Source: Cyanophora paradoxa CCMP329 (lineage: Eukaryota; Plantae; Glaucophyta). Taken from it: a DNA stretch of 64,000 bases. Below the pieces are notes generated by a model, which saw nothing but the letters and a program-made list of their open reading frames with translations, had not been told where the DNA came from and made no database searches. Positions 12,301 through 56,450 of this stretch are shown here, piece after piece. Position 1 is the first letter of the stretch, and each line of letters opens with the position of its first letter. The position numbers were made by a program, and so were the translations under genes. The DNA lies in NCBI GenBank assembly GCA_004431415.1, contig QPMI01000634.1:1-64000 (forward strand), given 5' to 3'.

Positions 12301-13706
12301 TGGGTGAGGGAGTTTTAGAAATTAATCAAAGGGCAGCAGCAAAGAATATTCACAATGAGACCATATCAAGAGTGGTCACAGAGGATTACCTTCAAGCCCG
12401 AAACTACATAGATGAAACAGAACTGAATACAGTCATTGCAGGTATAGGTGTCACAGGAAATTACCTCCCTCTCACAGGTGGGATTATTAATGGAACAGTG
12501 ACAGCATGCAACTTCTTTGTCCATACTGAAAGTAATCAAACTTTCCCTGTTGTCCATCCAGGAGGTGAGTATGAGATACCAGATGATCCAGCTATAATGC
12601 CTATCAAGATCGATCTCCCTTCTGATTATGTTGGAAGGGGTGAACTGAAAACCATCTCTTTCACAGGAGATTATAATGATCTCCTGAATAAACCTTCAGC
12701 TGCAAACCTGCATCCTGTTGCTTATTCAGGTAGCTTCCTTGATCTTAATAATAGATCACACACTCACACAAAGGCAGAAATTACAGATTTCGCACACACT
12801 CACACCAAATCCCAGATAACAGATTTTGCCCACTTCCACACCAGAGCAGATATAACTAATTTTGCTCACACTCATTTTAAATCTGAGATAACAGATTTTG
12901 CTCACACTCACACAAAGTCACAGATAACAGATTTTGCCCACACTCATACTAAGGCAGAGATTACAGATCTTGGAAATGTCTCTTATGTGGGTCACACTCA
13001 TACTAAGAGTGAGATAACAGATTTTGCACACACCCACACCAAAGGTGAAATTACAGACTTTGCACATACTCATACTAAATCTCAAATTACAGACTTTGCA
13101 CACACTCATGTTTGGGTAGATATTACAGATCGACCTTCTCTTGATCCCTTCACAGCAAATACAATCACAGCAAACAATACCATGTATGCAGGATCAGGTT
13201 CCATTCTAAATTATGACCCATACATTATGCCTGATCCTCCTCTCATTTGGAATTTCCACAATTCAACACTTTCTACAAGTCATATATCATATTATCAGGA
13301 TAAAACACTCCTAGTTCGTGGAAATGCATATGCAAGAGAAATGTGGGTCATGGATCCTCGGGACAATTCAAAGGTTACTAAGCTGGCACCCCAATACATG
13401 CTTGATAACCTTATTAGAAAAGGGAGACATGAGATGACAATTGCAAACCCTCAAATTGGTGGTAGTTCAGCAAGGCAAAACCACACAATTACTCTGAGTT
13501 GGAGTCCTGCCTTTGCCACTCCCCCATCTGTTGTTGTGACATTGCAGGGATTACCTGCAACAAATGTAGAAATCGACTACAAAATAGGGATATCAAGCAA
13601 CTCAACAACCTCAACCACAATTAACCTTGTTATTTGGGCAGCAGGATGGGTAACCATTCAGCCACAGTGGCTTCAAATTGCAATCCATTGGATAGCATCA
13701 GCATAA
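9333..13706 (+). CDS. Large virion fibre-like protein with phage-tail-type HxH repeats
   Basis: About ten HTHTKSQITDFA repeats (12758-13130), HxHxWxxIxxKPxxFPP repeats and acidic EEYLPDGxDP repeats. Also an internally duplicated ~180-aa block and a C-terminal beta domain (FATPPSVVVT). Confidence 0.8.
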   Translation: MSFNYPPNLETIQDDNASSTKHVNFDNIKVKGSVSIDHSSDNSSKTQSREHALSVNQTDPDKEEVSVAFSLGNVKANQVAEIKATRRRPRKLKTSGTHPDIPSRFDSGRLIFNVQDEQGKQNTALRIYNEGSTAKAEVPQVLQVGPIANTNQVSYTNDVYPKDITYDFARNEPFGFFTPKDVHQKKPSITINSSPSQPVAIHLHPDLVEMDRHLLPLYSNVKDLGIRTRQWRNIHGSNVYANGEKLVSEKTLREIIEHYGPNGPTVPFPIPFPNGPPDLTPKKQPGREYTATEDVAFGQHIVSWEQVRNKPIIEPRKQIDEQYLPPEVDILELDEYQFVPDEEEYLPDGFDPQEYEYDQFDPNEEEILPDGLDPQEFEYEQNYEPDEEYLPDGHDPPAVDYEQPYEPHEELLPDGFRPEIWEFFPDYEQINNKPAKYPPEDHNHDWDEILGKPQKYPPEDHRHDWGEIDGIPTEFPPSKHEHTWDEINDQPEFAKVEPLDNLGVSLYQTCNVPERIFLNEHYVHVNGTLANSAMRGPLHIRTLPGSYNPPPEPGATIPNIFVSSYMEADIPTDTFRVPTDPATYQNFNSAIQVHVADVSSLDGSRPMIVFSRDKYSYIPIVGTANDNYGRAELAWIKTDYGGVLEANQRMAAKNIHNENISRVVTEDYLTAVVLVNIVTLAMLANYVTKNELALELSKYLLKTGGTITGDLTVTSNLYTSNLYASNITVDYLTVTSNANLPHHPTSNVVDGWIKNHTHTKDQIIDFDHTHAWSNIVDKPLTFPPDDHTHAWSNIVDKPITFPPDTHTHDYTQITNCNHRHPWSEIDQQPKFASAGNLLTDSPHGVSLYQSNAIPERLQLNDYYVNRKGIDAGTTMEGELYIRPPTRMQMIAAGGNFGALDTKPGIYLTSYYADDIPMTGGLLSLPSDPVNYDDKDAAIQINVTDVSDLDGSRPKLIFSRERLLPDALLGNRDDYKRCEMAWIKTNYNGGVGEGVLEINQRAAAKNIHNETISRVVTEDYLQARNYIDETELNTVIAGIGVTGNYLPLTGGIINGTVTACNFFVHTESNQTFPVVHPGGEYEIPDDPAIMPIKIDLPSDYVGRGELKTISFTGDYNDLLNKPSAANLHPVAYSGSFLDLNNRSHTHTKAEITDFAHTHTKSQITDFAHFHTRADITNFAHTHFKSEITDFAHTHTKSQITDFAHTHTKAEITDLGNVSYVGHTHTKSEITDFAHTHTKGEITDFAHTHTKSQITDFAHTHVWVDITDRPSLDPFTANTITANNTMYAGSGSILNYDPYIMPDPPLIWNFHNSTLSTSHISYYQDKTLLVRGNAYAREMWVMDPRDNSKVTKLAPQYMLDNLIRKGRHEMTIANPQIGGSSARQNHTITLSWSPAFATPPSVVVTLQGLPATNVEIDYKIGISSNSTTSTTINLVIWAAGWVTIQPQWLQIAIHWIASA

Positions 13707-13731
13707 TAAAGATTCTCACACTATTACAAAG

Positions 13732-14805
13732 ATGACCTCTCTATTAGAGATCCCAAACTATGAACTTGCAGCCAAATCACTCCATAGCACCTCTCATGGA
13801 GTAGTTGATTCAACCCCTGGGTATATTTGCACTGAAACTTCAAGTAATACCTCTTTCACAGAGAATGATAAACTCAGAGTCAAAGAAATTCGATGTGATC
13901 GCAATGGGGGCAAGATAAGAACCACAGGGATTATTATCTCGAATAAAAATCAGGTTCAAGCAGGTCAAGTTGTCCCAGATTCAGCAATATATGATAATGT
14001 AGGTGGATTTACCACAGCACAGATAGTTACTTTTGGTAACACAAGTAATAATTCTGCACTTGTGGTTAAAAGTGGAGGAGCCTATATTGGTGATGGAGCA
14101 ATTGTGGTGGGGGCTGTCACAGCAAATCAGTTGACTGTGAATGGGACAAGTAGTTTTGGTGGGTATATGACTTTCAATGGTGGGCTTTCAGGGAGTATTC
14201 AGTATGGAACTCTCACACTTTCCACAAGAATCAACACACCTGAAATAAATACAATCTTGAACACAAATTCTACATACAAACGAAATGGTAAGTCGATTTT
14301 TATATTAGGGAATATACAGACGACACCAACCAATATAGAAGCACTGACATTTTCAACAGGATGTTATTTGAAAAGAAATGGATGTCCTCGTTTTCTGGCT
14401 GGTAAATCAACAAATTGGAGTTTTTTAGCGAACAATTCACACATTCGTCCCTATACAGCAACTGGACTAATAAATAATGGAAATGCATTCGATATTACGA
14501 CTGGAACTTTTACAGCTCCTATAACTGGAACTTACCGGTTCTTTTTTGGTGGAAATTTCAATGGTACTGACACATTCCCATCAACTGTTATTTTCAATCT
14601 TAGAAAGAATGGACTATCTACAACACTTCAGACATCTACAACAAATGATTATTCAACAATGCAAATTCATTTCTCAATGGACTGCATCATTAATCTCATT
14701 AAAAATGACTGGATTCGAGTGTATAATAATTCTTCGGATATTGTTGAAATAGGTTTTACTGGGAATCAATTTTACTTTGGGGGAATGCTGTTAAGTGTTA
14801 CATAA
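13732..14805 (+). CDS. Fibre protein with C-terminal C1q/TNF-like head
   Basis: PRFLA...NNGNAFDITTGTFTAPITGTYRF...LRKNG...IINLIKNDWIRV is C1q-like; N-terminal domain shared with the next three fibres. Confidence 0.8.
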   Translation: MTSLLEIPNYELAAKSLHSTSHGVVDSTPGYICTETSSNTSFTENDKLRVKEIRCDRNGGKIRTTGIIISNKNQVQAGQVVPDSAIYDNVGGFTTAQIVTFGNTSNNSALVVKSGGAYIGDGAIVVGAVTANQLTVNGTSSFGGYMTFNGGLSGSIQYGTLTLSTRINTPEINTILNTNSTYKRNGKSIFILGNIQTTPTNIEALTFSTGCYLKRNGCPRFLAGKSTNWSFLANNSHIRPYTATGLINNGNAFDITTGTFTAPITGTYRFFFGGNFNGTDTFPSTVIFNLRKNGLSTTLQTSTTNDYSTMQIHFSMDCIINLIKNDWIRVYNNSSDIVEIGFTGNQFYFGGMLLSVT

Positions 14806-14826
14806 TATTATCATTATAAAGTAAGA

Positions 14827-15846
14827 ATGTCTACACAAATTGCAGTTCCTGTTTTCTGTTATGCTGCCCCTAAATTACATCAACTTAACCACACAGTCAC
14901 AGATGCAACCCCTGGTTTTATTTGCACAGAAACAACAGGAGCCGATTCGTTTTCGCAAAATTCTGTGATAAGATGCAAAGAAATTCGATGTGATCGGAAT
15001 GGAGGCAAGGTGAGAACCACTGGACTAATTGTGTCAAATAAGAACCAAGTTCAATCAGGTCAGATTGTTTCTGATTCCGCAATTTATGATGATGTTGGAG
15101 GGGTCACCACACCAAAACTTGTAACTTTCGATAATACAATAAATAATGCTGCTCTTGTTGTGAGAAGTGGAGGCGCATATATTGGAGATGGGGCGAGAGT
15201 TGATGGAACTCTTACAGCAACTCAACTTGCAGTGACAGGGACAACTACTTTTACAGGAGTGGTAACAGCAACTGGTGGGATCTCATTACCAACAGCCTCT
15301 CAATCTGTCATAACTGCAACCACAAGAGTAGTAACACCTGAAATTGACACAGGGGCTGATGTTAATTTAATTTTAAAGCGAAATAGTAATCCAATAGCAA
15401 CTTTAGAATCGAACTGTTTAACAATTAATACGAACTGCTATTTAAAGAACACTTTTCAACCGAGATTTAGCTATCAACTGGGATATAATCACACTGCTAC
15501 AAGCTCTGCTGCTCTCATTAATTGGGTCACAAATATTGTTGATCAGACAGGCGCTTTTAATGTCACCAATGGAAGATTCACTGCTCCTGTAGCTGGGCAT
15601 TATCGTTTCTCAGTTTATACACAGTCAACAACAGCAGCTGCAATTCAGATTTATTTAAAAGTAAATAACCTCGATCCAGGGATGATCCTAACTACACAAA
15701 GCACCAGCACAGCAGCTGTTAAACCCCTTCAATTAACAGCCATTCTAAATGTTGCAGCCAATGAGCATGTCACTGTGTGGACAGGAACCTCTGGGACATA
15801 TTCATCTGCAACAGTTTTCAGTGGAGAGTTGATAAGTATCACATAA
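14827..15846 (+). CDS. Fibre protein with C-terminal C1q/TNF-like head
   Basis: GAFNVTNGRFTAPVAGHYRFS...ILNVAANEHVTV...FSGELI; N-terminus highly similar to 13732-14805. Confidence 0.8.
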   Translation: MSTQIAVPVFCYAAPKLHQLNHTVTDATPGFICTETTGADSFSQNSVIRCKEIRCDRNGGKVRTTGLIVSNKNQVQSGQIVSDSAIYDDVGGVTTPKLVTFDNTINNAALVVRSGGAYIGDGARVDGTLTATQLAVTGTTTFTGVVTATGGISLPTASQSVITATTRVVTPEIDTGADVNLILKRNSNPIATLESNCLTINTNCYLKNTFQPRFSYQLGYNHTATSSAALINWVTNIVDQTGAFNVTNGRFTAPVAGHYRFSVYTQSTTAAAIQIYLKVNNLDPGMILTTQSTSTAAVKPLQLTAILNVAANEHVTVWTGTSGTYSSATVFSGELISIT

Positions 15847-15867
15847 TTTTCTCTCTATGGAGTAGGA

Positions 15868-16134
15868 ATGTCGAATATATACCAAGTGGTTCTCTCTGAT
15901 AGCGAAAAGCTCGGAATGGAATATTGCTGCGCTTCGGTTCAGGATTGGATTGATAATGCTGTTCACAACAGAGCAAGAATCGCAATTGATGATATTGTTC
16001 AGAAAGAGATTCAATCTTGCATCTCATCAGGAGTTCAGATACCAACCTCAAAAGAAGCCATTGTTTTACAGGCATTCCAAAGGGGAACTGTAAAGAAAGG
16101 CATCGAGTATAATAATGTCACAGAAGGACAATGA
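15868..16134 (+). CDS. Small phage-type fibre-associated protein (possible assembly chaperone)
   Basis: YQVVLSDSEKLGMEY...VQDWIDNAVHNRARIAIDDI...IPTSKEAIV resembles small proteins I recall following C1q fibres in aquatic tailed phages. Confidence 0.6.
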   Translation: MSNIYQVVLSDSEKLGMEYCCASVQDWIDNAVHNRARIAIDDIVQKEIQSCISSGVQIPTSKEAIVLQAFQRGTVKKGIEYNNVTEGQ

Positions 16135-16169
16135 ACATTATTTTTCTTTCCTTCTTAGTAAAAGAAGCA

Positions 16170-17015
16170 ATGGGTGAATATAATCGAGTTCAACTGCCTA
16201 TATATTCCCTGGGATCCCCTGCAATGCATTTTCGCCAGCATGAAGTAAATGATGAGGTTCGTGGTTTAGAATCTACAGAGAGACCCAATTCCAATGGTAA
16301 CTCATTTGATAAAAATTCGATTATTCGAGTTAAAGAGCTGAGAGCTGATAAGAATTCAGGTGTGGTTAAAACAACTCGACTTCTTGTCACAAATGCAAAC
16401 TTCTTTCAGCCTACCAATGGAGGTCCAGATGCTTACAGTGTTGATCTGAAAGCCCTTGATTTCGATAAGAATTCTGCAGCTGTCACTGTGAGATCAGGAG
16501 GAGCATTTATTGGGGGTGGCTGTCGAATTTCAGGTCAGCTTTCATCCTCAATTTCGTATAATGATGTCCCAGATACTCTAGAGCAAAATGTGGAAGACCC
16601 CCAACGAATTCGATTATATACTCCTGTCGCACAGCAGCCATTAATTCAATTTTACATTGGATATACTGTTACTCTTGAAAACTCGGAATTAATTGAAGGA
16701 ACCAAAAGAGTACTGAGAGGTCTTGCGATTCCATCTGCAATGCTTTCCCTTTGTAGAGCCAACAACAATCAAGTAGGTCATAAATACTATTTCAATGTTC
16801 AGGGATATAATCATTTCGGTTATGGCTACTGTGTTTATAATAATAATTTCACCTTTGACTTGTTTGTTACAGATATTGGGTTATATACTATAACTCTTAT
16901 CGGTTTGAGAACAGATATAGCCGCTGTATCAGCTCTTAGAGGTGTAACTCCTGATACTCTTTCAGTTACAGGGTTTTACCAAGAGCCAGATGTAATTGAT
17001 GACCCAACCCCATAA
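16170..17015 (+). CDS. Fibre paralogue 3 (shared N-terminal domain, different head)
   Basis: IRVKELRADKNSGVVKTTRLLVTNAN...VRSGGAFIG matches the family N-terminus. The likely start is the ATG at 16170, not 16131. Confidence 0.7.
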   Translation: MGEYNRVQLPIYSLGSPAMHFRQHEVNDEVRGLESTERPNSNGNSFDKNSIIRVKELRADKNSGVVKTTRLLVTNANFFQPTNGGPDAYSVDLKALDFDKNSAAVTVRSGGAFIGGGCRISGQLSSSISYNDVPDTLEQNVEDPQRIRLYTPVAQQPLIQFYIGYTVTLENSELIEGTKRVLRGLAIPSAMLSLCRANNNQVGHKYYFNVQGYNHFGYGYCVYNNNFTFDLFVTDIGLYTITLIGLRTDIAAVSALRGVTPDTLSVTGFYQEPDVIDDPTP

Positions 17016-17038
17016 AAGATATATCCCTTTAATGTAAA

Positions 17039-17872
17039 ATGGCTGAGCAACCCCCACTTGAACGAATTATTACACCTCAGCTATCATTAGCTGCCCCAGC
17101 AAACCATGTTTTACAGCATGCTACTTTTGATGATGTGGAAGGTCTCCAATCCACAGAGGTCCAACCTACAATGAACACCTTTGGTTCCACCCACAAGCTG
17201 AGATTACAGGAACTCAGATGTGATAAAAATAATGGAATAGTTAAGACAACTAAGCTACTTGTCACAAATGCAAACTTCTCTGCTCATTATGGAGACCCAG
17301 ATAGCTATGGAGATCCTCTGTCTACTTATTCTTTTGAATCTAGGTCGGGAGCTATTAACTGCAAATCGGGGGGAGCTTATATTGGTGATGGTCTTAGGGT
17401 TGGTGGGGCTGTTGGAGCGCCTCTATTTGTGAATGATCAACCCAATCCCATTGATCCCAATACAAGAATTCGAACATATGTCCCCAGCATGAATGCCCCC
17501 TATATAATCAAGATATTCCCCATTGTTGTGAATGAACAAACAGCAGTAGTAGATTCTCTTGTTGAGATTGGTGACCACTACAAGGTTGTTGTGGATATTC
17601 CACCAGATGTATATGCTCTATGTCAAGTAGAGGGTGGAACTCCTAATTTTGCTGTTGTGATCACCCCATATGATAATTTCGGAATTGCTTATCATGGAGT
17701 CAATTTCGGTTTGGAAGACTATCAGTTTCTGGTTAGAGCCACCAAGTTTGGTATCTACAAGTGTGTATTATATGCTGAGAGAACCGATTTTATTGCAAAG
17801 CAGAATACCTATGCTGAATACTATGGGACAAATCGATATTTCCCCATTTTTGGGCAGGATACTGCTCCATAA
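17039..17872 (+). CDS. Fibre paralogue 4 (shared N-terminal domain, head related to paralogue 3)
   Basis: LRLQELRCDKNNGIVKTTKLLVTNAN...KSGGAYIGDG; C-terminus YDNFG...GIYKCVLYAERTD resembles YNHFG...GLYTITLIGLRTD of paralogue 3. Confidence 0.72.
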   Translation: MAEQPPLERIITPQLSLAAPANHVLQHATFDDVEGLQSTEVQPTMNTFGSTHKLRLQELRCDKNNGIVKTTKLLVTNANFSAHYGDPDSYGDPLSTYSFESRSGAINCKSGGAYIGDGLRVGGAVGAPLFVNDQPNPIDPNTRIRTYVPSMNAPYIIKIFPIVVNEQTAVVDSLVEIGDHYKVVVDIPPDVYALCQVEGGTPNFAVVITPYDNFGIAYHGVNFGLEDYQFLVRATKFGIYKCVLYAERTDFIAKQNTYAEYYGTNRYFPIFGQDTAP

Positions 17873-17894
17873 GAATATTGGTTATATATAGAGT

Positions 17895-18167
17895 ATGGAT
17901 AGTAAAACAAAAAAGTTTATTGATGCTGCTATGACAGTCCATGGTAAAGATAAATTCGATTACAGTGAGACACATTACATCAAAGCTCAAGAGAAAGTAT
18001 CTGTTAGATGTTTGCAGTGTAATAAGGTGATCCTTACCTATCCCTTTAATCATGTGAAGGGATCAGGTTGCAGGGACTGTAACAAAAGAAAGAGTCAAGC
18101 ACACAGGAAAAGAGCTACTTCATCAATCAGAGTAGAGTATAGGGATATTTGCATTAGGTTTGACTAG
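17895..18167 (+). CDS. DUF723-like zinc-ribbon protein
   Basis: FIDAAMTVHGKDKFDYSETHY...VRCLQC...NHVKGSGCRDC. Confidence 0.65.
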   Translation: MDSKTKKFIDAAMTVHGKDKFDYSETHYIKAQEKVSVRCLQCNKVILTYPFNHVKGSGCRDCNKRKSQAHRKRATSSIRVEYRDICIRFD

Positions 18168-18190
18168 TTAATTTTTCTAAGGTATTCTTA

Positions 18191-18589
18191 ATGGAGACTA
18201 AATACAGAGGCTTTCATGTTATGCTTGATTACAAGGCTAAATCAGCTATAGCAACAGGTTATGAGCATGTTAGCTTCCTAGGTAATTGGATTATGGGAAC
18301 CCTTGAACAAGCAGTATTGAGACAAGGTATTAGGATTGTTCATAAGCATTGTGAGATATTTGATGGCAAACTATCACCTCCTGGTTTTGCATTGGTTCTG
18401 CTATTAGATGAAAGCCATTGTACAGCTCATTGTTATTCCAATGAAGGCATGTTAGCAATTGATATATTCAGTTGTGGTAAAGAAGCTCAGCATAAAACAC
18501 AATCAGTAGCAGATGAGATCGATAAAACAATGAATTTCTTAACATTTGAGAAGACTGAGAGACATAAACATGATAGATTCCCGTTTTGA
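18191..18589 (+). CDS. speD: S-adenosylmethionine decarboxylase proenzyme (short prokaryotic/viral type)
   Basis: GFHVMLD, PPGFALVLLLDESHCTAHCY (E-S self-cleavage site, ESH motif) and AIDIFSCG; 132 aa. Confidence 0.85.
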   Translation: METKYRGFHVMLDYKAKSAIATGYEHVSFLGNWIMGTLEQAVLRQGIRIVHKHCEIFDGKLSPPGFALVLLLDESHCTAHCYSNEGMLAIDIFSCGKEAQHKTQSVADEIDKTMNFLTFEKTERHKHDRFPF

Positions 18590-19008
18590 TGGGTTTCTAT
18601 AATGATAAACAGGGTAATTTACCTTTTTTATTACAATGGCAATCGTTAAAAAAGGATATAATATATCCTTTCCTACAATAGCTTTCTACAATGATTTTCT
18701 TTCTACAGTAGCTTTTGTTACAATAGAATTCTACTGTATGATGTAGCCGAAATATGAATGCACCCTACATTAAGCAATGTCAAGTATTTCGAATACTATT
18801 CGATTTCCTTACAATAACACTCAGCATCTGCCCTAGATTCCCCCTATTACCCTATTATTTAAGTGGACTCAAGGTTGACTCATATTAATCGTAAAAGTAG
18901 TAAAAGTATATGGATTTTGTTACGAATTCAATGGGAGGGTTGACTAAGTGGGTTGAGTTGACTCAAATTTCACAGGAAATAACAATGAATCAGAGTATAA
19001 ATGCATTT

Positions 19009-19039
19009 TTTGAATCAACTACACCAACTAACACTGAGA
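19009..19039 (+). repeat. 31-bp direct repeat, copy 1 (TTTGAATCAACTACACCAACTAACACTGAGA)
   Basis: Identical copy at 28389-28419; each copy precedes an iteron module. Confidence 0.85.
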
Positions 19040-19319
19040 AAGTAGAAGATATCATATAGTATTACCATATATGGTTTGTCAGGCACTATAATATAGTTGT
19101 CAGGCACTTATATAGTATGTCAGGCATTGAGGAGATTGGTACCCCGGAAAATTGAGCGAAGGCCCGCGAGCGAGTAAGCCGGCGCAGTGGGGCTTCCCCA
19201 ACGCGGGTGCCTGCTAGCACTGCACGTGGCTGGTCCCAAAACTCGCGCGGCCGACGCTCCGTAGTCCAGCCCGACCGAACTCCAAACCCAGCGAACATCG
19301 ACCGCCCAGCCGCGGCCCC

Positions 19320-22300
19320 ATGCCCGCCACCTCAGCGGAGACAGCAGCCACACCGTCGGATGCGCCCCCGGACGCACCGACGCCCCGCCCGCTGCTCACG
19401 GTCGCCTTTTTGAATGTCGAAAGCCTTGCAGGCATACCTCGGCGCATCTGGCTCACCGGATGGCTCAAGCGTACCAAAGTGGACGTCCTCGGCATCGTTG
19501 ACCACCGGCTCAATCCGAAGCAGATCGCGGCCCTTACGCAGCGCATCGAATCATCGTGGCGCGTGCTCATCCCGCCCGCCGCAGAGCTTAAACCCAACGT
19601 CTGGAGCCGAGGCACCGGTTTCCTCGTCCGCAAAGCCATCCCGGCCCTCCCCGGTGCTACAGCCACGCTCGTGCCCCTCCCGCCCACGCCGGGCCTGCGG
19701 CCGCACGATGCTTCACTACTTCGCCTCTCCAGCGACACCAACGCATACAGCATTATCTGCCTCTACGCCCCTAATGACGCGGCCTCGCAGAAGCGCCTGG
19801 CGGCAGGCGTCACCCAGGCGATCGAATCGCTCCAGCTTCCCCCGAACGACGCCCTCATTCTAGGCGGCGACCTAAACGCCTACGCGCTCCCGCATTTAGA
19901 AAGCCGCCGCCGTGCCGGCGCACCGCCCCCCTTCGGGCACTGGTCCGATCTCATGGCTGACTTGGACCTGTTCGACGAACATCGCCGCAGGCGGCCGCGA
20001 GACCGCATATACACGCGCTGGCACCGCAAGACGAACCGCTTCGACCAGAACGCGGCGCGACTGGACTACGTCCTCCTCTCAGCCGACCTCTGCGTCGCGG
20101 CGGAGCGCGTCGGTATCCTTCGCACGGCGGGCGCGGCCCCGCGCCCTGACCACGACGCGGTCTACGCGCGGCTCCATACGGACGCCGTCATCGCGCCCCG
20201 GGCGGCCCGCTTCAGGCTCCACGACCGCATCCTCCACTTCCCGCCGTTCCAGCGGTCCGTGCGGGCCTGCACGGCCGAAGCGCTAACTCGCCAGCCGGCT
20301 CTCTGCACCGTGGAGTGGCAGCGCTGGCTCGACGAGCTCTTCGCTGAATACAGGGAGATCGCCCGCCGTACCCGCCCCCAGGCTGACTCGGAGGTCCGAG
20401 ACGCCCGCGAAGTGATCGCAGGCCTCTGGCGCGACGCGGAACAAGCGCTCCAAGACGCGGAGGTAGACACCACCGAAGAAGACTACGCGGTCGCCGATAT
20501 GGGCTACCTGACCATCCAGGAAGCAGCGCTCGACGCCGCAGACGCGGCTCTTAGCTCCCGCAAGCACCTAGAACGCTCCCTCGCGCACGCGCACACAGTC
20601 CCCCCCGAGCTCGCCCGTCATATTAAGTACTCCTCGGCCGACAACCGTATGCGCTCGCTGCAGCCGTACCCCCCGCGAGAGGGTACCCCGGCGGCCACGA
20701 CGGAGGAAGACATGGCGGCGCACGCCTGCGCATACTACACGGAGCTCCTCGCGGCCCAACGCCCGCTTCCCCCCGACCTCCCGGCGGCCACGCCGCCCTC
20801 GGCTCCGGCGGCCCCGGCCCGCCGCCAAGAACCACGGGCAACGGAGCATTCCAATGCTCGCCCAGGCACCACCACGGGGTCGGAGCCTGAAGGCGCTCGC
20901 CCGTACCAGGGAACGGCTAGGCCGAACCCGCAGACCACGGGGCCCGAGCCGGAAGGCGCTCGCCCGTCCTTGGAACCGGGAGCCTCGGGCCCCGTGGACG
21001 TGACGCCGGAAGCCACCGCCGCTTTCCCGGCGGTCGTCGAGAAGCTGCGCGCTGCCCACCTTCTCACCCCCGCCGACCCCCTCACGTGTGAGGAAGCCGA
21101 GCTCTTGTCCCGCTGCCTCGATACAGCGCCCCCGCCCTTGCACCCCCCGATGTGCGCCCCCTATACGGTTGGCGAGATCGAGGAAAGACTAAAAGAGATG
21201 AATAAGTCGACAGCGCCGGGCGAGGACGGCCTCTCTGTAAAGTTCTATCTCACGTTCTGGAACATCCTCGGCCCGATAGTCACAGAAAGCTATAACTGCG
21301 CGCGCGCGCTGGGCACCCTATCGGAGCGCCAACGCACGGGGCTAATCCAACTGCTCTATAAGAAAGGAGACCGCGATAAAATCCAGAACTGGCGCCCAAT
21401 CACCCTCCTGCAAATAGACCGCCGCCTCTTCGGAGCGGTTCTCGCGAAGCGCATAGCGCCCGCCTGCCAGCACACTATCAGCTCCGTCCAAACGGGCTTT
21501 ATGCCGGACCGCACCGGGGCAGACAACGTCTGGCAGATGCAAGCCGTCATCCGTCACGCGGACCGTACGGACCAGCATGTCGTGATACTAAACACCGACT
21601 TCGAGAAAGCGTATGACCGCGTAGAACACCTCTATGCGCTCCGGGTCCTAGCGGTCCAGGGCTTCCCGCCCGAATTCCTCGCCGACGTCCGAGCTATCAC
21701 GAAAGGCGCTAGATCAAAAGTTATGATCAACGGGCAGATCTTCCCAACCATCATCCCGGTTACGCGCAGCGCTCTCCAGGGCGACCCATTCGCATGCATG
21801 TTCTTCAACACGCAGCAGGAGCCCACCACGCGAGACATCCTCGCGGACCCCGAAATCACAGGCGTACCCGCCCCTCGGGACCCCGGGATCGAATCCAAGC
21901 TGGTCCAATACGCCGACGACGCAGCGCACTCGCTCAAGATCAATCCCCGCAGCCCAGACCCTGGCCTGCCCGTTAAGAAAACCATAGCTAAGTACCAGAA
22001 AGCAGGGAAGTACAACGGCTCCTCGCTCAATCTCGGCAAAACCGAAGGCATGCTCGCGGGAGCCGCAGCACCGACAAAGCGGCCCGGCCACCCAATCACC
22101 CTCCCAGCATGGACCCAAGCGATTCCGATCCGCTGGGTCAAGTCCACGTCCACGCTCGGTATCCCGCTCGGCCCGAGGGGCGAATTTGACGCCCGCCCTT
22201 ACTGGGCTAAGCGTGTAGACGGGATGCGCAGCCGGAGAGCTCGCTGGAACCTGCGCGCGATGCGCGTCCACCAACGCGTCAACGTAGCCACGGCCATCGT

Positions 22301-24329
22301 GGCGTCTGTTAATATGTACGCGGCCGCGTTCCTTCCGTGCCCCCCGTCGGCCCTCCAAGCCATTAAGGACGAATACTGGGCAGCAATATGGCCCTCGTCC
22401 GCAGATGCACCCGCCCGGAAGCGCAGCGCGCGCGGCCGGATATCACGAGCGAAAGCTGTCCTCCCACCGTCCAACGGCGGCCTCGGAGCACTCGACCTTG
22501 AGAGCCGCCTCCTGGCGCAAGCAGGCACGTACATTCGAGCGCTCTGTGACCCCTCCTTCGCGGTTTGGAAGCTTTTCGCCGCAGAAGAGATGCAGGAACT
22601 AGTGCCCAAGAAATACGCGGCGGCCGCGCAGGCCCTCGGCCTCAACGCGCTGGGCGCCGACCTCCGCTTCCGCCCGTATGCAGCCCTCCTCCCTGCTCAG
22701 GGGCCCCTCGCACCAGCGGTGCGCATCCTCACGCTCCTACGACCCCCGGAATCGGGCCCGACCCCCCTCCGGTGCCCGCCGCACCGCGCAATCGCGTCCC
22801 TGCCGCTCACGCGGGATCGCCTCAGGGCGGAGCCGCTCTGGCTCAACCCGGTGCTCGCCCCGCCTGGCCAAACCTGGGGCATAGGCAAAATTGATGAAGC
22901 CCTCGCCGCCCGGCTCACTGCCGCCCACCAGATCACCGGCCCCGCGCCCCAAGACCTCTCCCAGGCCGCGTACACGCGCCTGAATGAAATCCGCGCCCAG
23001 GTCCGCCTTCGCGCAGCCCAGCTCGGCCTCGCCCCTCTCGACACGCCCCCCCAAGCTATCCTCCCCGGGGCCGACCCTCGGATATGGCTGATCGCAGCCC
23101 CAGCAGAAGCTGGCGCTGGCCCCAGAAGGCCGCGCTCAGGCCCGATCATCTTCGCGACCCCAGGCACCCCGCCGCTGGGCTGCACGACCAGCACAATGCC
23201 CGACGGCACCATAGTAGGCCCGCCCGGCCCCCCCGCGCCCCTCCCAGCCGCCCCCGCGCTCCTCCCCCGCGCCCTGATCATCGCCGTCCCACCGGGGTCG
23301 GCGAAACAAAAAGCCCGGTGGCCAGACGGCCGCGCCGTGACCGCGGGCCGCCTCGACCGCGCCCCCTGGATCCACACCGGGCTCCTCTACCGGACCCCGA
23401 CCGGCCCCCGCCCCTGGCTCCACTACCGCATCTCGGCGGGCTACCGCGCCCTCCGGGCCCAGCCCCCCCGCCCGGCCCCCGGCCCTCTCGCCCGCTTCGG
23501 CCCCCCGCCCCCCGGCAAATGCTGGACCCAGGTGTGGGGCGCGGGCACGCAACATGCCCACCTGTCCCCGTGGAACCGCGAGACCTGGCTCTGGGCCACC
23601 CACGCTTGCCTCCCCGCCGGCCAATTCCTTTTCCATATTGGGGCTCGCCCGACCCCGTTCTGCTGCGCCTGCCCCGGCTCCGATGTACCCCCCGATACCT
23701 CGGACCATGCAGTCTTCTACTGCGAGCCCGCGCGCGCGGCCTGGGAGGAACTGCTCGATAGGTGGAACGATTTCTACGGCACCTCTATCCCCCTCGAATG
23801 CGCGCACGCCCTCACCGGATTCCTAGCCGTCCCAGAAGAGCTTAAAAAGCGCCGCACCGGCTCCGCACGCCAGAGACGCGAATTCCGCATGCCTCGTAGC
23901 CTGCTAGCGGCCCTGGCGGGCCTCATGATCAGCGCTGCATGGTCAGCCCACGTCCGCGCCATCCAGGACAACGCCCCCGACAGCACCGACAACACGCCCC
24001 GCCGCCCTACCAAGAAATCGATCTGGCAAGCATTTGAGCGCGCAGTCTGGGCCCGCACCCTCCTAGAGCAGAGCAAGATCGAGCTCGCCACCCGGGGCCT
24101 CCCCCAGGACGCGACGCAGCCAACTTTAGACCCGGACACAGTGGCCTGGAACTGGGAGCCGGCCGACCCCGACGCGCCCCCGGACGCCCCGGCACCCCCA
24201 CTCCCCCAGGCGCTCTGGACGGCAGACAGCTTCATTGCCACAGCCCACCGCTCAGCACACGAAACAACCCTCACCCGCGGGCCCCTCCTCGACCCGCCGC
24301 CGGACTCAGACCCCGACAGCGACGACTGA
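19320..24329 (+). CDS. ORF2-type protein: APE endonuclease, reverse transcriptase and C-terminal zinc finger
   Basis: APE: FLNVESL, LYAPN, GGDLNA, RLDYVL, PDHDAV. RT: APGEDG, NWRPITLL, QTGF, DFEKAYDRV, LQGDP, YADD, LNLGKT, LGIP. Zn finger: CCAC...DHAVFYC. 1669 aa, uninterrupted. Confidence 0.95.
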   Translation: MPATSAETAATPSDAPPDAPTPRPLLTVAFLNVESLAGIPRRIWLTGWLKRTKVDVLGIVDHRLNPKQIAALTQRIESSWRVLIPPAAELKPNVWSRGTGFLVRKAIPALPGATATLVPLPPTPGLRPHDASLLRLSSDTNAYSIICLYAPNDAASQKRLAAGVTQAIESLQLPPNDALILGGDLNAYALPHLESRRRAGAPPPFGHWSDLMADLDLFDEHRRRRPRDRIYTRWHRKTNRFDQNAARLDYVLLSADLCVAAERVGILRTAGAAPRPDHDAVYARLHTDAVIAPRAARFRLHDRILHFPPFQRSVRACTAEALTRQPALCTVEWQRWLDELFAEYREIARRTRPQADSEVRDAREVIAGLWRDAEQALQDAEVDTTEEDYAVADMGYLTIQEAALDAADAALSSRKHLERSLAHAHTVPPELARHIKYSSADNRMRSLQPYPPREGTPAATTEEDMAAHACAYYTELLAAQRPLPPDLPAATPPSAPAAPARRQEPRATEHSNARPGTTTGSEPEGARPYQGTARPNPQTTGPEPEGARPSLEPGASGPVDVTPEATAAFPAVVEKLRAAHLLTPADPLTCEEAELLSRCLDTAPPPLHPPMCAPYTVGEIEERLKEMNKSTAPGEDGLSVKFYLTFWNILGPIVTESYNCARALGTLSERQRTGLIQLLYKKGDRDKIQNWRPITLLQIDRRLFGAVLAKRIAPACQHTISSVQTGFMPDRTGADNVWQMQAVIRHADRTDQHVVILNTDFEKAYDRVEHLYALRVLAVQGFPPEFLADVRAITKGARSKVMINGQIFPTIIPVTRSALQGDPFACMFFNTQQEPTTRDILADPEITGVPAPRDPGIESKLVQYADDAAHSLKINPRSPDPGLPVKKTIAKYQKAGKYNGSSLNLGKTEGMLAGAAAPTKRPGHPITLPAWTQAIPIRWVKSTSTLGIPLGPRGEFDARPYWAKRVDGMRSRRARWNLRAMRVHQRVNVATAIVASVNMYAAAFLPCPPSALQAIKDEYWAAIWPSSADAPARKRSARGRISRAKAVLPPSNGGLGALDLESRLLAQAGTYIRALCDPSFAVWKLFAAEEMQELVPKKYAAAAQALGLNALGADLRFRPYAALLPAQGPLAPAVRILTLLRPPESGPTPLRCPPHRAIASLPLTRDRLRAEPLWLNPVLAPPGQTWGIGKIDEALAARLTAAHQITGPAPQDLSQAAYTRLNEIRAQVRLRAAQLGLAPLDTPPQAILPGADPRIWLIAAPAEAGAGPRRPRSGPIIFATPGTPPLGCTTSTMPDGTIVGPPGPPAPLPAAPALLPRALIIAVPPGSAKQKARWPDGRAVTAGRLDRAPWIHTGLLYRTPTGPRPWLHYRISAGYRALRAQPPRPAPGPLARFGPPPPGKCWTQVWGAGTQHAHLSPWNRETWLWATHACLPAGQFLFHIGARPTPFCCACPGSDVPPDTSDHAVFYCEPARAAWEELLDRWNDFYGTSIPLECAHALTGFLAVPEELKKRRTGSARQRREFRMPRSLLAALAGLMISAAWSAHVRAIQDNAPDSTDNTPRRPTKKSIWQAFERAVWARTLLEQSKIELATRGLPQDATQPTLDPDTVAWNWEPADPDAPPDAPAPPLPQALWTADSFIATAHRSAHETTLTRGPLLDPPPDSDPDSDD

Positions 24330-24350
24330 GGCCGCGGCGCCCGGACGCCG

Positions 24351-25145
24351 TCACTCCCAGGGGCACTTCAGCCCCGCCGGCCGCTCATGCGCGATCGCCT
24401 CCAGCCCGTTCGCGGCCGTCCCATCACCTTCCTGCGGACGGGGCAGAACAATGAGAGAAACAACGGGACCAGCTGCAGAGCCCCGCTGCGCACCAGGAAG
24501 TCCATCGCTTGATCGACGGTGAGGAACCGCCGAGAGTCCCGACCCCGGACCCCCGGCACCCGCCACACCTGGGCCAGAGCGCACTCCCGCCCCGGATAGG
24601 TCTCCGTCTGATCCCTGAGCGTAGCGCGAGAAGACGGCCCCCAGCGTGACCGGCGACACCGCGTCATAAGCGCTGACGAAATCCGCAGCACACAGCGCGC
24701 GAGGCGCAGCTGCGCACCAGATCGAGTAAATCCCGGGCCGAATCCCATGGCGCACTGCATAAAACGCCAGCGTACTCTTCTTCGCGACCTGCGAGCACCC
24801 AGGGTAGGGCAGCTCGTAGAAGTACGCCCGTACTACGCCATCACGAAACATCGCGGCCGCGGCACGCAGATGCCCGCGGAGCGTCCTCAACATCGGGAAA
24901 GCCGCAGGCACGACCTCGCCAGGGCTCGAGCCGGCGCTCCCAACTACGACAGCGTCGTCCGCAAAACCGCTTAGAACCTCGCCATCGCTCAACTCGGCTG
25001 CAGCCGGGGTCGCAGAAACGCGGTCTTCGCCAACCGCAGCCCGCTTCGCCGAAGGCTCACCCGCGGACGACTCACTCCCGCTACGCTCCCGCTTGCAATC
25101 CGCCTCGCAGCCGGGGCCCGGCGCTCCCTCGGGCATATCCGCCAT
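24351..25145 (-). CDS. Spliced antisense gene encoding an RNase H1 N-terminal hybrid-binding / caulimovirus viroplasmin-like domain
   Basis: Removing GT-AG introns 24717-24615 and 24493-24432 gives FYAVRHGIRPGIYSIW-DQTETYPGRECALAQVWRVPGVRGRDSRRFLTVDQAMDFL-EGDG...CPWE*. Confidence 0.75.
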   Translation of the reverse strand: MADMPEGAPGPGCEADCKRERSGSESSAGEPSAKRAAVGEDRVSATPAAAELSDGEVLSGFADDAVVVGSAGSSPGEVVPAAFPMLRTLRGHLRAAAAMFRDGVVRAYFYELPYPGCSQVAKKSTLAFYAVRHGIRPGIYSIWCAAAPRALCAADFVSAYDAVSPVTLGAVFSRYAQGSDGDLSGAGVRSGPGVAGAGGPGSGLSAVPHRRSSDGLPGAQRGSAAGPVVSLIVLPRPQEGDGTAANGLEAIAHERPAGLKCPWE

Positions 25146-25284
25146 CGCTCCAATGCAAACTAGACCCCACCCCCCCCCTCGGGGGGTACAAGCCCCTCAA
25201 TCATGGCCTAGTCCCAGATCCCCCCCTAGATCCCCATACCGGGGACCCCGGCGCTCATTCCCGCCAAGGCACCCCGTTGCGACG

Positions 25285-27627
25285 ATGGCGTTCGTCGCCC
25301 CCGCCCTTCCCGCTGCGCCTACGGGCCTCATCAAGCCCTTCCTCGTCAACGCCGCAAGGCCGGTCTCGCCCAAGGCTGTCGTCGCCGCCGCCGCCGCGGC
25401 CCGCACGTCGACGTCGTCTCCACCCGCGTCGCCGAAGCCCGCGCGCCAATCCTCCTCTAAGTCGAACGAGAGACTGAAGGAGAAGCAAGCCGCGCAAGCG
25501 CCGCCGCCGCCGGCGCCGGCCGAGGCCGGCCCGTCCAAGGGAACTAAGGTGAATCCCGTGCTGGCCGCGCCGAGCCCGGCGCTCACGTCCCCCAAACAGG
25601 GCCGTGGGCGTCCGAAAAACTCCAGCCAGCCCAAGCGCGCCTCGCCGCGGACGCAGAAGAAGGCGACGGCCCCAACGGCGCCGGCTCATGACGAGGACCA
25701 GGCGAGGCCCATCCCTCATACCCGAGCATCGCGCGCACTAAACAGAGATTATACGCAGCCCGATGAGCGGCAGCCGCTCCTCCAGGAGGCGCTGCCCGTG
25801 CCTAAGCCGCTGCCGACCAAGGCCCCGCCGGCGCCCCGCAACACCAAGCGCGGCAAGATGCTCACAGACCGGTCGAAGCGCACTCTCGTGCTGTCAAAGC
25901 TCAAGGCCGACGCCGCCGTCCTTTACGACAAGGAGCTAGTGCGCGCACCCGCCCCGAAGGCCGCGCCTCTAAAACCTGATCCCCGGCCCGGAACCGCGCT
26001 CGCAGTACAATAAGCTGATGAAGTTCGGCGACGGCGTCGATTTCACCAAGTTCCCGGACCTCGTCGAGGCGGATGGCACGCTGCGGCAGGACTACCTCGA
26101 GATCATCGCGAACAAGGCCCTCGAGGCGATCGGCTGGCTCGAGCGCGCCAGCCCCGTCATGACGGAGGTCTACCTGATCGGCCGCCACAAGAAGGTGGCC
26201 CTCCTCCACCTCACCGACATCGAGGTCTCGATGGAAATGAACCGCGAGCTCCGCACCCGCTTCCCCGACGCGCGCGGCTGCCTCGCCGAGATCGAGCTCG
26301 CCCTCGGCCACGCGCACCGCACGCTCAAGGTACGCCGTCGCGCGCGCCGAGTGCGCGCACGTGCCGACGCTGGGCCCCGGCCCGCAGATCCGCTTCTGCC
26401 AGGACCTCTCCGTCGCGAGCCGCCACGCGGTCTACGCCGGCCTCACCGACGAGCAGCGCGAGCTGGGCTGGTCCTACCGCATCTTCTGCGGCATCCCGGG
26501 CGTCTACACCGACGAAGCCTTCGACGAGATGGCCCGGGTCCGCATGCCGAGCCTCCGCTAGCCCAGATAAAGAAAGATAAAACCGAGCCTAGCTATGGCC
26601 CAACCGCCGCGCGACCCCGCCTAAGCCCCGGCCCGTCTGCACAGTCGGTCTGGCTCGAGCCCGCCGTCGTCGACGGCAAGATCAAGACCGTGAACCTCAC
26701 GGCCGACAAGCCCCGCCGCTTCAAGCGCGACGGTGACAACATCGCCGTCCTGGGCAAGGAGATGGAGCCCGTGCCGGACTCCGACGACTCCGAGGGCGAG
26801 GAGCAGGAAGTCCGCGCCCCCACTATACCCCGCCCGACGGCCCGGTACCCCCTCCGCTCACACACGCGAGGCAGACGCTCTACCCCGACTCGGTGGCCCT
26901 CGAGGCCACCAAGAACAGCAAGAAGATCTCCCGGGAGCACCGCATCAACTACCCCGACGGGGTGGGCGGCCGCGCGTCCTACCGCCCCGGCCACTCCACG
27001 GGCGCACGCCGGCTCAACCGCCTCAGCGCCCTCAACGAGGACAAGACCCCCGAGGAGGCCGCCCAGATCGCGGCGGACCTCGCCGCCCAGTCCCGCAAGC
27101 GCGCGATTGAGCGCTTCGGCCCCGACGCCGTCAAGAAGCGCAAGGGCGGCGCCGCCGCCCCCGCCCCCGCCGCCGGGGCCGCCGCCGCCGCCCCTCCGCC
27201 GACGCCTCCGCCGCCGCCGCGGCCGCCGCCGCCGCCGCTGCCGTCGCCGCCGCCGCCGCCGCCGCCGCCGCCCCGGCGCAGGCCGCCGCCCCCGCGCCCG
27301 CCCCGGGCCCGGCTCCCGCCCCCGGCCCCGGGCCGGCCACCATCTCGCTCACCAACTACCAGGCGGCCCAGCGTGTGCTTGCCGAGCTCACCTCGGCCCT
27401 CGGGGGCCCCGCCGCCATCGAGGCCCTCCTGGCCGGCCGCCGGGCGGCCGCCGCCGACAACGCGGCAGCGTAGACCTCCCCCCTCTTTTCGATCCCAACG
27501 GCCTCGGCCCTTTCGCCCTTTCGGCCTCAGTCTCCTTTTTCACTTTTCTCTCTTTACAATTCGCGGTAGCACGACTGCCAAAGAAGGGGGCCTCATGACG
27601 AGCCCACCGCCCCCCTCTCTGAGTTAG
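25285..27627 (+). CDS. Spliced gene, ORF1p/gag-like candidate with two RRM-like segments (3' end uncertain, 27473-27627)
   Basis: Phase-0 GT-AG introns at 25939-26005, 26330-26387, 26538-26644 and 26810-26874 join the frames: RTLVLSKL...DKEL|YNKLMKFG...KVALLHL...TLK|IRFCQD...YRIFCGIPGVYTDEAFDEMAR|SVWLEP... Confidence 0.7.
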
Positions 27628-28388
27628 ATAGCTCCATGAAGCAATGTCACCTCCCTACCCCGCCCCCGCGCAAAGCCCTGCCCACCTGCGGGCCCGCCCC
27701 CTCCTAAAGCTTTTCCCCCGGCCCAGAAGCTAGTGACAGACTAGCCCCACGGCCGGTACCCCCGCCACGCCCCTCTGTCCCCCGAACACACTAGGGCGCC
27801 CACCCCGCTCGCAACCGACCGCCCCCGCAGCCCCCCCCGATAATGCCTCTCACCAGGACCACATACTCCCCGCGCCCCACACGCCATAAAAAGAAGGGGG
27901 CGCGCCCGCTACCCTAGCCCGCGCCGCCCCCACCCCCCCCTCCCCACCCCTCTTCCCCGCCCGATAAGATTGGCCTCCTCGGCGCCGACGACCCCCCGCA
28001 CCTACACTCAAGAACACGACAAACGACCCCCTACCACGCCTCCACCCACAAGAGAAACGCTCAGCTGTAGCGTCGAGGCGCCTATCCCTGTGTTCCGGCC
28101 TCAGGTTATGCTCTGACCCAGAGTTCGGCCTATTCCGAACCGGTAGTGCGTACGATGATGTTACTGAACAAATACAATCGCCACCGCCCTTGATATGGGC
28201 TTTGTGAAAAAAAAAGTATGTCAGGCATTGTCAGGCACCTTTTTAGAAAACTTTTCTATAATTCAAATTTCATTGTTGATCCAAACAATGACTTTGCCAA
28301 AATAAAATACTTTGTCAAAATCGATGGATTTAATGCCTGACAAATAAATGCTGCCTGAAAGATTTTAAATCACATTCCTAAGATCACA

Positions 28389-28419
28389 TTTGAATCAACT
28401 ACACCAACTAACACTGAGA
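28389..28419 (+). repeat. 31-bp direct repeat, copy 2
   Basis: Identical to 19009-19039. Confidence 0.85.
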
Positions 28420-43595: not shown

Positions 43596-44106
43596 CACAG
43601 CGGTACGCGTTTGTATGGCGCCATAGACATGGAAGGTTAATTCTTGGCGATCGCGGAACTTAGATTTACCATATCTTGGTGATCGCGTATAGCCAGAATT
43701 AACTTAATAGCTAATGGAAACTCAAAAGTTTTCTCGTCTTTTTTTCAACTTGACCGTTGTGCCAGCTGCAAACTAGACCGACCGGGAACCGTCGCAACGT
43801 GGGAACTTGAAAACAAACGTGCCAAATCCGCCGCGAGCGCGCCGATGTGCTCATCTAGCATCTATCTACCTTAGTTTTGTAGGCGGTGGCTATTTTTTGT
43901 AGATCCAGGGAGCCGGTTTGCGCCTGTTGCGCCGCGGCGAAGTCCAACCTAGGCGAGGAACCGGGGTACGCTAAATTGTCAAGTCCAAGTTCCGAGCTTA
44001 CCAATTACGTGTAGACGTAACAAACTTACCGATTTTACACAGAGTTTTAACCACCAAGCGTTAATTCTTCCAAGTCTATGGGCCCATACAAACGCGTACC
44101 GCTGTG
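43596..44106. mobile_element. Non-autonomous TIR element with CAC termini (CMC/EnSpm- or Transib-like)
   Basis: TIR CACAGCGGTACGCGTTTGTATGG / CCATACAAACGCGTACCGCTGTG, extending imperfectly inward; AA on both flanks. Confidence 0.8.
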
Positions 44107-44345
44107 AAGGCGGCGGCGCGCGAGGGCGCCTATAGCTAGCTGATCTAATTTTTTTTATAAGCCTTGGGGAGGCGGCTTCATGATCAGTACTGCGGTATGG
44201 TCGTGATTGAAATGAAGTGACAAAATTTTTGAGGCGAACGCGGTGCGCATATTACCTAACTGGCAATGCCTGCATGTTACACTTGTACGCTAGCGGGGGC
44301 CGGTTAACCTGCCTAGATGCGCGGAGGCGAATACGAAACTTTATG

Positions 44346-48732: not shown

Positions 48733-49064
48733 CGCAGCCTAGAGAGACCCGCCGACTCTAGCAGTCGGTGCACGTGCGGCCTGGCATGCGGCAATTGCTG
48801 GAAGGAGGTTTTTTTCCTGCGAGGGGGGTATCGATAACAAACGCATTCGTCTTCGCCGCCATCCAGCAGATGAGGCCGCCTTCTGATCACAGATAGCTAG
48901 AGATAGGGTAGCCGAGCTCGACGCCGCGCCCGGTCACCGGACCGCCGGCGCCGGCTCTCGATTATAGGCAACGGGACTGGAGCCGCGAGTTGGCTCCCGA
49001 GGCTCTACAGAGCTAGGTCCGCTGCCGACGTTGCGCCCCGCCTGATCCGCTGACCCTCGGCAAG

Positions 49065-53404: not shown

Positions 53405-53735
53405 AAGATGTCTTTGCTTCTCCTGCCACGTCATGGCATGCACGTCCATCCAGCTCGTCATCCGGATCCGGCGGGCCGGAGGGGCGCGGGTACCCAGATG
53501 GGGGCCTCGGAGGAGGGGGGCGCGTCCGCTGTCGATCGGGAGGGTCCGAAGCGCATTCCGAGTTCTGTCGGCGGCGGCGTGCCTTTACGTATACTTTCGT
53601 GGCCCTTCATCAGTCGGGGGTACCGAATTATTTATCGCAACGCTTTGCCGGTGCTAGCCAGGCTCGCCGCTAGCTGTATCAGCTCCAACCCAGCAGGTTC
53701 AGTTGCGCTAGTGGCGCAGAGAGAGCCGGCCGGCC

Positions 53736-56399: not shown

Positions 56400-56450
<51 letters not shown>

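Follow-up and report, generated by a model that had tools for sequence, protein, structure and literature searches.

We characterized a long interspersed nuclear element (LINE) in the genome of the glaucophyte Cyanophora paradoxa CCMP329, and in particular the intron-bearing gene that it carries in sense orientation in its 3′ third. The window, that is, the whole stretch of DNA that was analysed, comprises 64,000 nt (contig QPMI01000634.1, positions 1 to 64,000 of the forward strand; assembly GCA_004431415.1), and the LINE insertion occupies 19131-28215 on the plus strand, or 9,085 bp. From 5′ to 3′, it holds a short 5′ untranslated region (UTR), an open reading frame (ORF) for an endonuclease and a reverse transcriptase (ORF2), a probable antisense gene, a spacer, the sense gene with at least four introns, a 3′ UTR and a poly(A) tail (Table 1). 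What is new here is an L1-like LINE whose unusual 3′ gene module contains introns; as a gene model, the sense gene was already available in public data, where it figures as an orphan protein with no annotation. Introns should be lost when an element is copied through RNA, and the RNA that was reverse-transcribed at this site still held all of the introns of the sense gene, the protein frame of which exists only once they have been removed.

The limits of the insertion were set by comparison of the window with itself, using the target-site duplication (TSD), the tail of nine A residues and an alignment with a paralogous, uninterrupted copy of the target. The left flank (19047-19129) aligns to positions 1553-1637 of this empty site and the right flank (28216-28344) to positions 1623-1751, and the two alignments overlap there by 15 nt, which is exactly the TSD. 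Because of the duplication, the tail and this overlap, 19131-28215 is identified as the mobile unit, which had kept its introns when target-primed reverse transcription placed it here. The base composition agrees with these limits, in that a block of 68-72% GC spans ~19.1 to 28.2 kb of the window within DNA of ~35-45% GC. Nested insertion of two elements was considered and rejected: neither an internal poly(A) tract nor a second TSD was found within the element 3′ of ORF2, so it is a single element rather than a nested pair. The sense gene lies wholly inside the TSD-bounded unit, and the sequence-only reading, an earlier note made from the letters of this stretch, was therefore right to place a multi-intron, sense-strand gene within a LINE. 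The insertion is apparently young and full-length. As to its surroundings, the host flanks carry a perfect 31-bp direct repeat on either side (19009-19039 and 28389-28419), and the target region (19060-19130) is composed of short gtcaggcac-type repeats.

Several lines of evidence agree on the introns of the sense gene. Codons of this genome almost always have G or C in third position. None of the four intron lengths is a multiple of 3, and the high-GC codon position switches frame exactly at each intron; exons 2-5 have a GC content of 0.96-0.98 at third codon positions (GC3) and of 0.35-0.52 at second positions (GC2), and the four introns are without codon-position periodicity. Paralogous proteins, including the distant P0029 and P0032, align to the window in tblastn as separate pieces, which end within a few bases of the borders of introns 2, 3, and 4. 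In a word search, the exon-2 peptide matched one public protein at 100%, namely P0001 (EukProt EP00741, gene model tig00000137_g8148.t1, 569 aa), and this model uses the same four introns. Such a pattern is far beyond chance, and the four phase-0 introns that had been proposed from the letters are thus borne out by codon usage, paralogues and public model alike. Two further candidates of the same reading, both in exon 1, fared less evenly. The first (25549-25599) is a 51-nt GT..CAG segment that keeps the frame, but its GC3 of 0.88 looks coding; the second (25702-25758) is 57 nt long, in frame and free of stops, with a GC3 of 0.53 that looks non-coding, but it begins with GC rather than GT. P0001 removes both. 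We therefore count at least four introns in the sense gene, and up to six if both in-frame, stop-free candidates are included.

Table 1. Features of the LINE insertion and of its empty target copy, in window coordinates.
Feature	Position	Strand	Remarks
Empty target copy, paralogous and uninterrupted	1553-1751	+	~83% identical to both flanks; single copy of the TSD
TSD, left copy	19116-19130		15 bp, gtatgtcaggcattg, identical to 28216-28230
5′ UTR	19131-19319	+	189 nt; stops in all three frames; flat GC1/2/3
ORF2	19320-24329	+	1,669 aa, intact; APE endonuclease, reverse transcriptase with YADD, Cys/His-containing C-terminal region
Antisense exon C	24351-24431	-	Returns to exon A frame; stop codon 24353-24351, 22 nt past the ORF2 stop
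Antisense intron b	24432-24493	-	62 nt, GTGCGCAG...CAG
Antisense exon B	24494-24614	-	GC1/2/3 0.75/0.50/0.82; second half of hybrid-binding-like motif, by eye
Antisense intron a	24615-24717	-	103 nt, GTGCGCAG...CAG
Antisense exon A	24718-25145	-	ATG at 25145; 3′ end is first half of RNase H1 N-terminal-like motif
Spacer between divergent start codons	25146-25284		139 bp, head-to-head; candidate promoter, from geometry only
Sense exon 1	25285-25938	+	654 nt; basic low-complexity N-terminus, isoelectric point (pI) 11.1; contains candidate introns 25549-25599 and 25702-25758
Sense intron 1	25939-26005	+	67 nt, phase 0, GTGCGC...CAG
Sense exon 2	26006-26329	+	324 nt, 108 aa; GC3 0.96, GC2 0.35; 100% match to P0001
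Sense intron 2	26330-26387	+	58 nt, phase 0, GTACGC...CAG
Sense exon 3	26388-26537	+	150 nt, 50 aa; GC3 0.98; most conserved block ..DLS..R..YAGLT....G.SYRI.., kept in subfamilies B and C
Sense intron 3	26538-26644	+	107 nt, phase 0, GTCCGC...CAG; three stops on read-through from exon 3
Sense exon 4	26645-26809	+	165 nt, 55 aa; GC3 0.96
Sense intron 4	26810-26874	+	65 nt, phase 0, GTCCGC...CAG
Sense last exon (exon 5)	26875-27473	+	Conserved YPDGVGGRASYRPGHSTGARRLN..SRKR block, Ala/Pro GCC-repeat linker, conserved C-terminal helices; stop 27471-27473
3′ UTR	27474-28206	+	Non-coding; flat GC1/2/3
Poly(A) tail	28207-28215	+	9 A, directly before the right TSD copy
TSD, right copy	28216-28230		15/15 identical to 19116-19130

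By their features, the introns borne by the LINE are ordinary introns of the host type. A host gene on the minus strand of the same window (~45.7-48.1 kb), with GC3 near 1.0 and exons of 100-300 nt, shares the donor motif (GT[GC]CGC donors at its frame switches), and the lengths of 58-107 nt are in keeping with the mean of 86 bp published for this genome, which has 67.6% GC and 9.2 introns per gene (PMC6704402). The 3′ end of the sense gene needed revision. Position 27627, where the sequence-only reading had ended it, closes an ORF that is open by chance in this GC-rich sequence; the C-terminus that is conserved (..ISLTNYQAAQRVLAELTSALGGPAAIEALLAGRRAAAADNAAA) lies in another frame, which stops at 27471-27473. 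The frame changes in a run of C near 27193, inside a GCC/CCG repeat (27151-27330, 96% GC) that encodes an Ala/Pro linker, and since paralogues carry an Ala/Pro linker at this place, the change is likely an indel in this copy or a long-read (homopolymer) assembly error. A seventh intron was tried as an explanation and discarded, since the repeat has a single GT..AG pair, and removal of the 39 nt that it spans, a multiple of 3, would leave the frame as it is. Several paralogues likewise have gene models that drift between frames in the GCC/CCG repeat. The same DNA also holds a 526-aa, ATG-started ORF (26018-27598) that is coding only over its first 104 codons, which belong to exon 2; beyond that exon it is a chance open frame in GC-rich DNA and a trap for ORF-based annotation.

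The sense gene has relatives elsewhere in the genome. For the comparisons, exons were searched singly, and whole-protein searches used the public model P0001. With P0001 as query, HMMER found 41 matches among 1.84 billion representative proteins, the first twelve of which (P0025-P0036) are credible; the remainder align to the Pro/Ala-rich linker. All credible relatives are gene models of C. paradoxa, distributed over 14 or more contigs, and no credible homologue outside this species was found among the 1.84 billion representatives. These models were predicted with BRAKER1/Augustus, with RNA-seq used in the training, from a PacBio/Canu assembly (PMC6704402). The relatives total at least 15 gene models with 31-100% identity and include a close group at 63-87% identity, together with P0031, which is 100% identical over 57 aa. 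The other two groups are subfamily B (P0029, P0034, and P0035), at 31-39% identity, and subfamily C (P0033 and P0032, adjacent models with the N- and C-terminal halves), and all three have conserved blocks in common at 31-39% identity. At the position of intron 3, the models of subfamily B hold an unrelated insertion of 41 residues and subfamily C is split into its two models, as would be expected if an intron at this site had been mis-handled; these protein models thus suggest, indirectly, that the intron may be present there as well.

Linkage to ORF2 recurs, as fusion or adjacency, at at least five other loci. P0002 fuses ORF2 (residues 1-941) to the helices at the C-terminus of the 3′ protein, P0026 fuses a reverse transcriptase piece (RVT_1 match) to exon 5 onward, and P0030/P0067 fuse a short ORF2 piece to the tail of the 3′ protein. 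Contig tig00000383 gives a case of adjacency: its model g24611 covers the C-terminal half of an ORF2 (57% identical) and g24613, which is P0029, is a 3′-protein homologue (~34% identical); exactly one gene model separates the two, an arrangement also seen in the window. Divergence has been faster in the 3′ protein than in ORF2 (~34 vs. ~57% identity). Because of the multiple relatives, the ORF2 fusions and the ORF2 adjacency, the sense gene is a conserved, multi-copy component of the LINE family and not a single-copy host gene unlinked to reverse transcriptase, the outcome that would have told against the sequence-only reading. Some copies appear to have moved very recently, as indicated by the tail of P0031 on another contig (tig00020542_g10446), identical as given above, and by the ORF2 of a further copy (P0070, tig00021137_g18970), which is 96% identical to that of the window; both identities point to this LINE subfamily.

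The ORF2 product has matches in Pfam to Exo_endo_phos (residues 45-266, E=1.1e-5) and RVT_1 (residues 684-947, E=1.2e-18), with the YADD motif seen in the alignment. The match to zf-RVT is weak (E=0.57), and a C..C..H..C pattern was seen by eye in the alignment. Among the matches listed, C. paradoxa paralogues of ORF2 are 50-96% identical as gene models, and the nearest relatives outside Cyanophora are L1-type proteins with APE, reverse transcriptase and zf-RVT at 25-36% identity. Judged by this domain content, the element is an APE-type, L1-like LINE. No ORF1 was found upstream of ORF2 in this copy, where the 189 nt have stops in every frame.

The spliced sense protein would be about 570-630 aa long. 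It begins with a basic, disordered N-terminus, continues with an alpha/beta core and a block that is helical and basic, and ends with the Ala/Pro linker and a C-terminal helical pair; the core is followed by a conserved block (YPDGVGGR.S.R.G....AR.LN..SA) and then by the basic helix with SRKR. A basic disordered N-terminus had also been described in the sequence-only reading, and exon 1 is indeed basic (pI 11.1). That reading had gone further and seen in the protein two tandem RNA-recognition motifs (RRMs) and a displaced ORF1 protein (ORF1p). In Pfam, including its RRM and L1 ORF1p families, neither the window exons nor P0001 gave a match at E<=10, and 13 family members gave none at E<=1 except for RVT_1 in one fused model. 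NCBIfam gave no match for the protein, and sequence searches of the PDB with P0001 and with the family profile returned low-complexity noise and nothing credible. AlphaFold2 reached a mean confidence (pLDDT) of 42 from the single sequence and of 50 from a 13-sequence alignment, and Foldseek of this latter, poor model against the PDB gave no match at E<=0.001. The first of the two claimed RRMs spans ~130 residues including a long helix and does not fit that fold. A related L1, taken from a metagenome contig (L002), carries a zinc-knuckle ORF1 of 316 aa located 48 nt upstream of its ORF2, and hhalign of our family alignment against the alignment of this ORF1 gave a probability of 0.8%. No CCHC zinc knuckles were found in the sense gene, which has 0-2 Cys per exon. 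Homology to ORF1p or to RRMs is thus unsupported by these comparisons; the protein may nevertheless resemble ORF1p in function, as a basic accessory factor. The basic N-terminus also contains, by eye, an AT-hook-like motif (GRGRPKN, 25600-25620), and the distant paralogue P0029 has KRGRPS correspondingly; the motif might have to do with the insertion of the element in AT-rich sequence.

A gene of three exons (25145-24351) probably occupies the minus strand of the interval that separates ORF2 from the sense gene. Both of its putative introns start at CTG/GTGCGCAG, where the slash marks the border, and end in CAG, and the reading frame changes twice; the GC3 of the gene is modest (0.72-0.82). 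A single, unspliced protein of 264 aa over the same interval was considered and rejected, as the coding frame shifts midway. Exon A matches Pfam Cauli_VI (PF01693) with E=4e-4 and 21.0 bits, a score equal to the cutoff of 21, over profile positions 2-20 of 44; exon B alone had no match in Pfam, NCBIfam, or the PDB. We tentatively suggest that the product has an RNase H1 N-terminal hybrid-binding domain that is split across an intron. The head-to-head geometry suggests that the 139-bp spacer might be an internal bidirectional promoter. Rfam and tRNA scans of the window gave no match.

Introns of the antisense gene survive retrotransposition trivially, and the puzzle lies in those of the sense gene. 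In our view, C. paradoxa probably harbors an L1-like LINE family with an intron-bearing accessory gene that serves the element, the template being unspliced and the messenger spliced. An unspliced, full-length RNA would encode the ORF2 protein and serve as template for retrotransposition, and the accessory protein would be made from spliced RNA. The likeliest source of the latter would be a subgenomic mRNA that starts in the spacer and is 3′-co-terminal with the element; alternatively, it could be a spliced fraction of the full-length RNA, as in retroviruses. The second route would also yield functional intron-less copies, which would be expected to spread, and the persistence of introns across subfamilies, if real, favors the subgenomic route or selection for the introns. 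The protein would act as an accessory factor in place of ORF1p rather than as its descendant, and may bind nucleic acid or help in the choice of AT-rich targets. LINE copies are usually 5′-truncated, and it is a speculative thought that such copies could go on expressing a 3′ gene that has a promoter of its own. The most elaborate form of this proposal, to which we give somewhat less than an even chance, holds that ORF1 was replaced by a 3′ two-gene, intron-bearing module with an internal bidirectional promoter, that the introns last through many cycles of retrotransposition because only unspliced RNA is copied while a spliced subgenomic mRNA gives the accessory protein, and that truncated copies still supply the protein. 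Elsewhere in the element, a consensus-like donor (GTAAGC, 19174-19179) is present in the 5′ UTR and a pyrimidine-rich, acceptor-like sequence (...cccccctag, 25217-25230) just 5′ of the sense-gene ATG; that the two could form an env-like subgenomic splice is pure speculation.

A number of observations weigh against an accessory gene that serves the element. Splicing, an internal promoter and a template RNA that stays unspliced are inferences from the DNA, and intron retention in other copies is deduced from protein models. It is possible that 5′ truncation removed an upstream ORF1 from this single copy. Barring an assembly error, the sense gene of this copy may be defective, and among the matches listed some ORF2-bearing contigs have no annotated neighbour resembling the 3′ gene. 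Furthermore, the sense-gene GC3 of 0.96-0.98 is host-like and above that of ORF2 (0.78), which fits a captured host gene that needs no role for the element. Along these lines, a divergent pair of host genes, with promoter and introns, could have been captured by unspliced read-through (3′ transduction) and now hitch-hike with no role in retrotransposition. Poly(A)-reliant L1-type elements can transduce 3′ flanks, the exon-intron architecture, donor motif and GC3 match those of host genes and differ from ORF2, and the head-to-head arrangement around 139 bp resembles a bidirectional host gene pair. Yet no host paralogue was recognised outside LINE contexts, nor, among the 1.84 billion representatives, any credible homologue in other organisms, and a gene with conserved blocks has been kept in subfamilies whose ORF2s are only ~57% identical. 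Because these blocks persist across diverged subfamilies, the gene seems to have been retained for long under protein-level constraint. The host-like features thus favor capture as the origin, whereas long retention with conserved blocks argues for function, and we consider capture without function unlikely.

Descent from ORF1p is far less probable still. The sequence-only reading had proposed a true ORF1p homologue with tandem RRMs that came to lie 3′ when a tandem array of ORF1 and ORF2 was circularly permuted. Such a view can draw on the basic disordered N-terminus, the linkage to ORF2, the absence of an upstream ORF1 in this copy and a beta-alpha-beta-beta-alpha-beta stretch (residues ~223-303) in the low-confidence AlphaFold2 model. 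The profile, PDB, Foldseek and hhalign comparisons and the lack of zinc knuckles speak against it, however, and the ORF1 of the related L1 sits upstream as usual; nothing in the data points to a tandem-array origin. We give least credence, and very little of it, to the view that the gene is a one-off, a host gene that merely adjoins this LINE copy, or an artefact of gene prediction. GC-rich DNA does yield long chance ORFs, such as 26018-27598 mentioned above, but a single TSD and poly(A) tail bound the whole unit, association with ORF2 was seen at the other loci, and frame-specific GC3 and conservation across subfamilies exclude a chance ORF.

Comparison with known systems places the accessory gene in context. 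With L1/Tx1-type LINEs, the Cyanophora element shares APE and reverse transcriptase in one ORF, a poly(A) tail, a TSD of ~15 bp and best outside matches that bear zf-RVT. The related L1 (L002) has its ORF1 upstream, whereas the Cyanophora copy has none and instead carries an unrelated, intron-containing gene ~950 nt downstream, with the probable antisense gene between. Retroviruses and some long terminal repeat (LTR) retrotransposons use balanced splicing to obtain both an unspliced genomic RNA and a spliced subgenomic mRNA. The logic proposed here would be similar, with the unspliced RNA as the form that is copied and a spliced RNA as messenger of a downstream gene. Unlike those elements, which splice out an upstream gag-pol with one or few introns, the Cyanophora LINE has a downstream coding sequence that itself holds four to six small host-type introns, and it lacks LTRs and an integrase. 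In Penelope-like elements, too, spliceosomal introns persist in transposed copies, but these elements have a GIY-YIG endonuclease, a telomerase-like reverse transcriptase and pseudo-LTRs in place of APE, poly(A) and TSD, and the Cyanophora introns lie in a separate downstream gene and not in the 5′ UTR or the reverse transcriptase ORF. Intron retention among retroelements has been regarded as a peculiarity of Penelope-like elements (PMC8557442). Another parallel is offered by the SymbioLINEs of Symbiodinium, LINEs that carry a DNA methyltransferase gene unrelated to ORF1p and ORF2p; those genes are intron-less and upstream of the reverse transcriptase, in contrast to a downstream gene with at least four introns, and introns are typically absent from genes that retrotransposons have captured (PMC5890265). 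Finally, human L1 shows that L1-type elements can carry 3′ flanks and encode antisense peptides. Transduced segments are copy-specific and usually non-coding, whereas the Cyanophora module appears to be family-wide, protein-coding and spliced. ORF0 is a primate-specific peptide of 71 aa encoded upstream of ORF1, and the antisense ORFs of L1 that have been reviewed, mammalian reverse ORFs among them, either are short or overlap with ORF1 (PMC5203782). Our literature searches found no account of how the LINEs of Cyanophora are built.

An APE-type LINE with a conserved, sense-orientation gene of at least four introns raises the question of how its template RNA is kept from the spliceosome, and also of how a LINE expresses a downstream gene. 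If the proposed accessory role is true, LINEs would be able to dispense with a conventional ORF1p, and a retrovirus-like division of RNA labour would exist in a non-LTR element. More immediately, a set of orphan gene models of C. paradoxa is explained as transposon genes, in a genome of which LINEs make up 2.47% (PMC6704402).

The remainder of the window is of mixed character. Host genes occupy 44000-58000 (72-85% GC, GC3 near 1.0), with exons of 100-300 nt and short introns. The flanks of the insertion (1-19130 and 28216-~29500) are AT-rich (35-41% GC) and tightly packed with intron-less ORFs, among them one for a patatin-like phospholipase (8036-9289, minus strand), one for a protein of 1,457 aa with a phage-tail-repeat match (9333-13706) and two with a C1q domain (13732-14805 and 14827-15846). 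This AT-rich region looks like an endogenous giant-virus-like region, of a kind that has been reported for C. paradoxa (PMC12344493).

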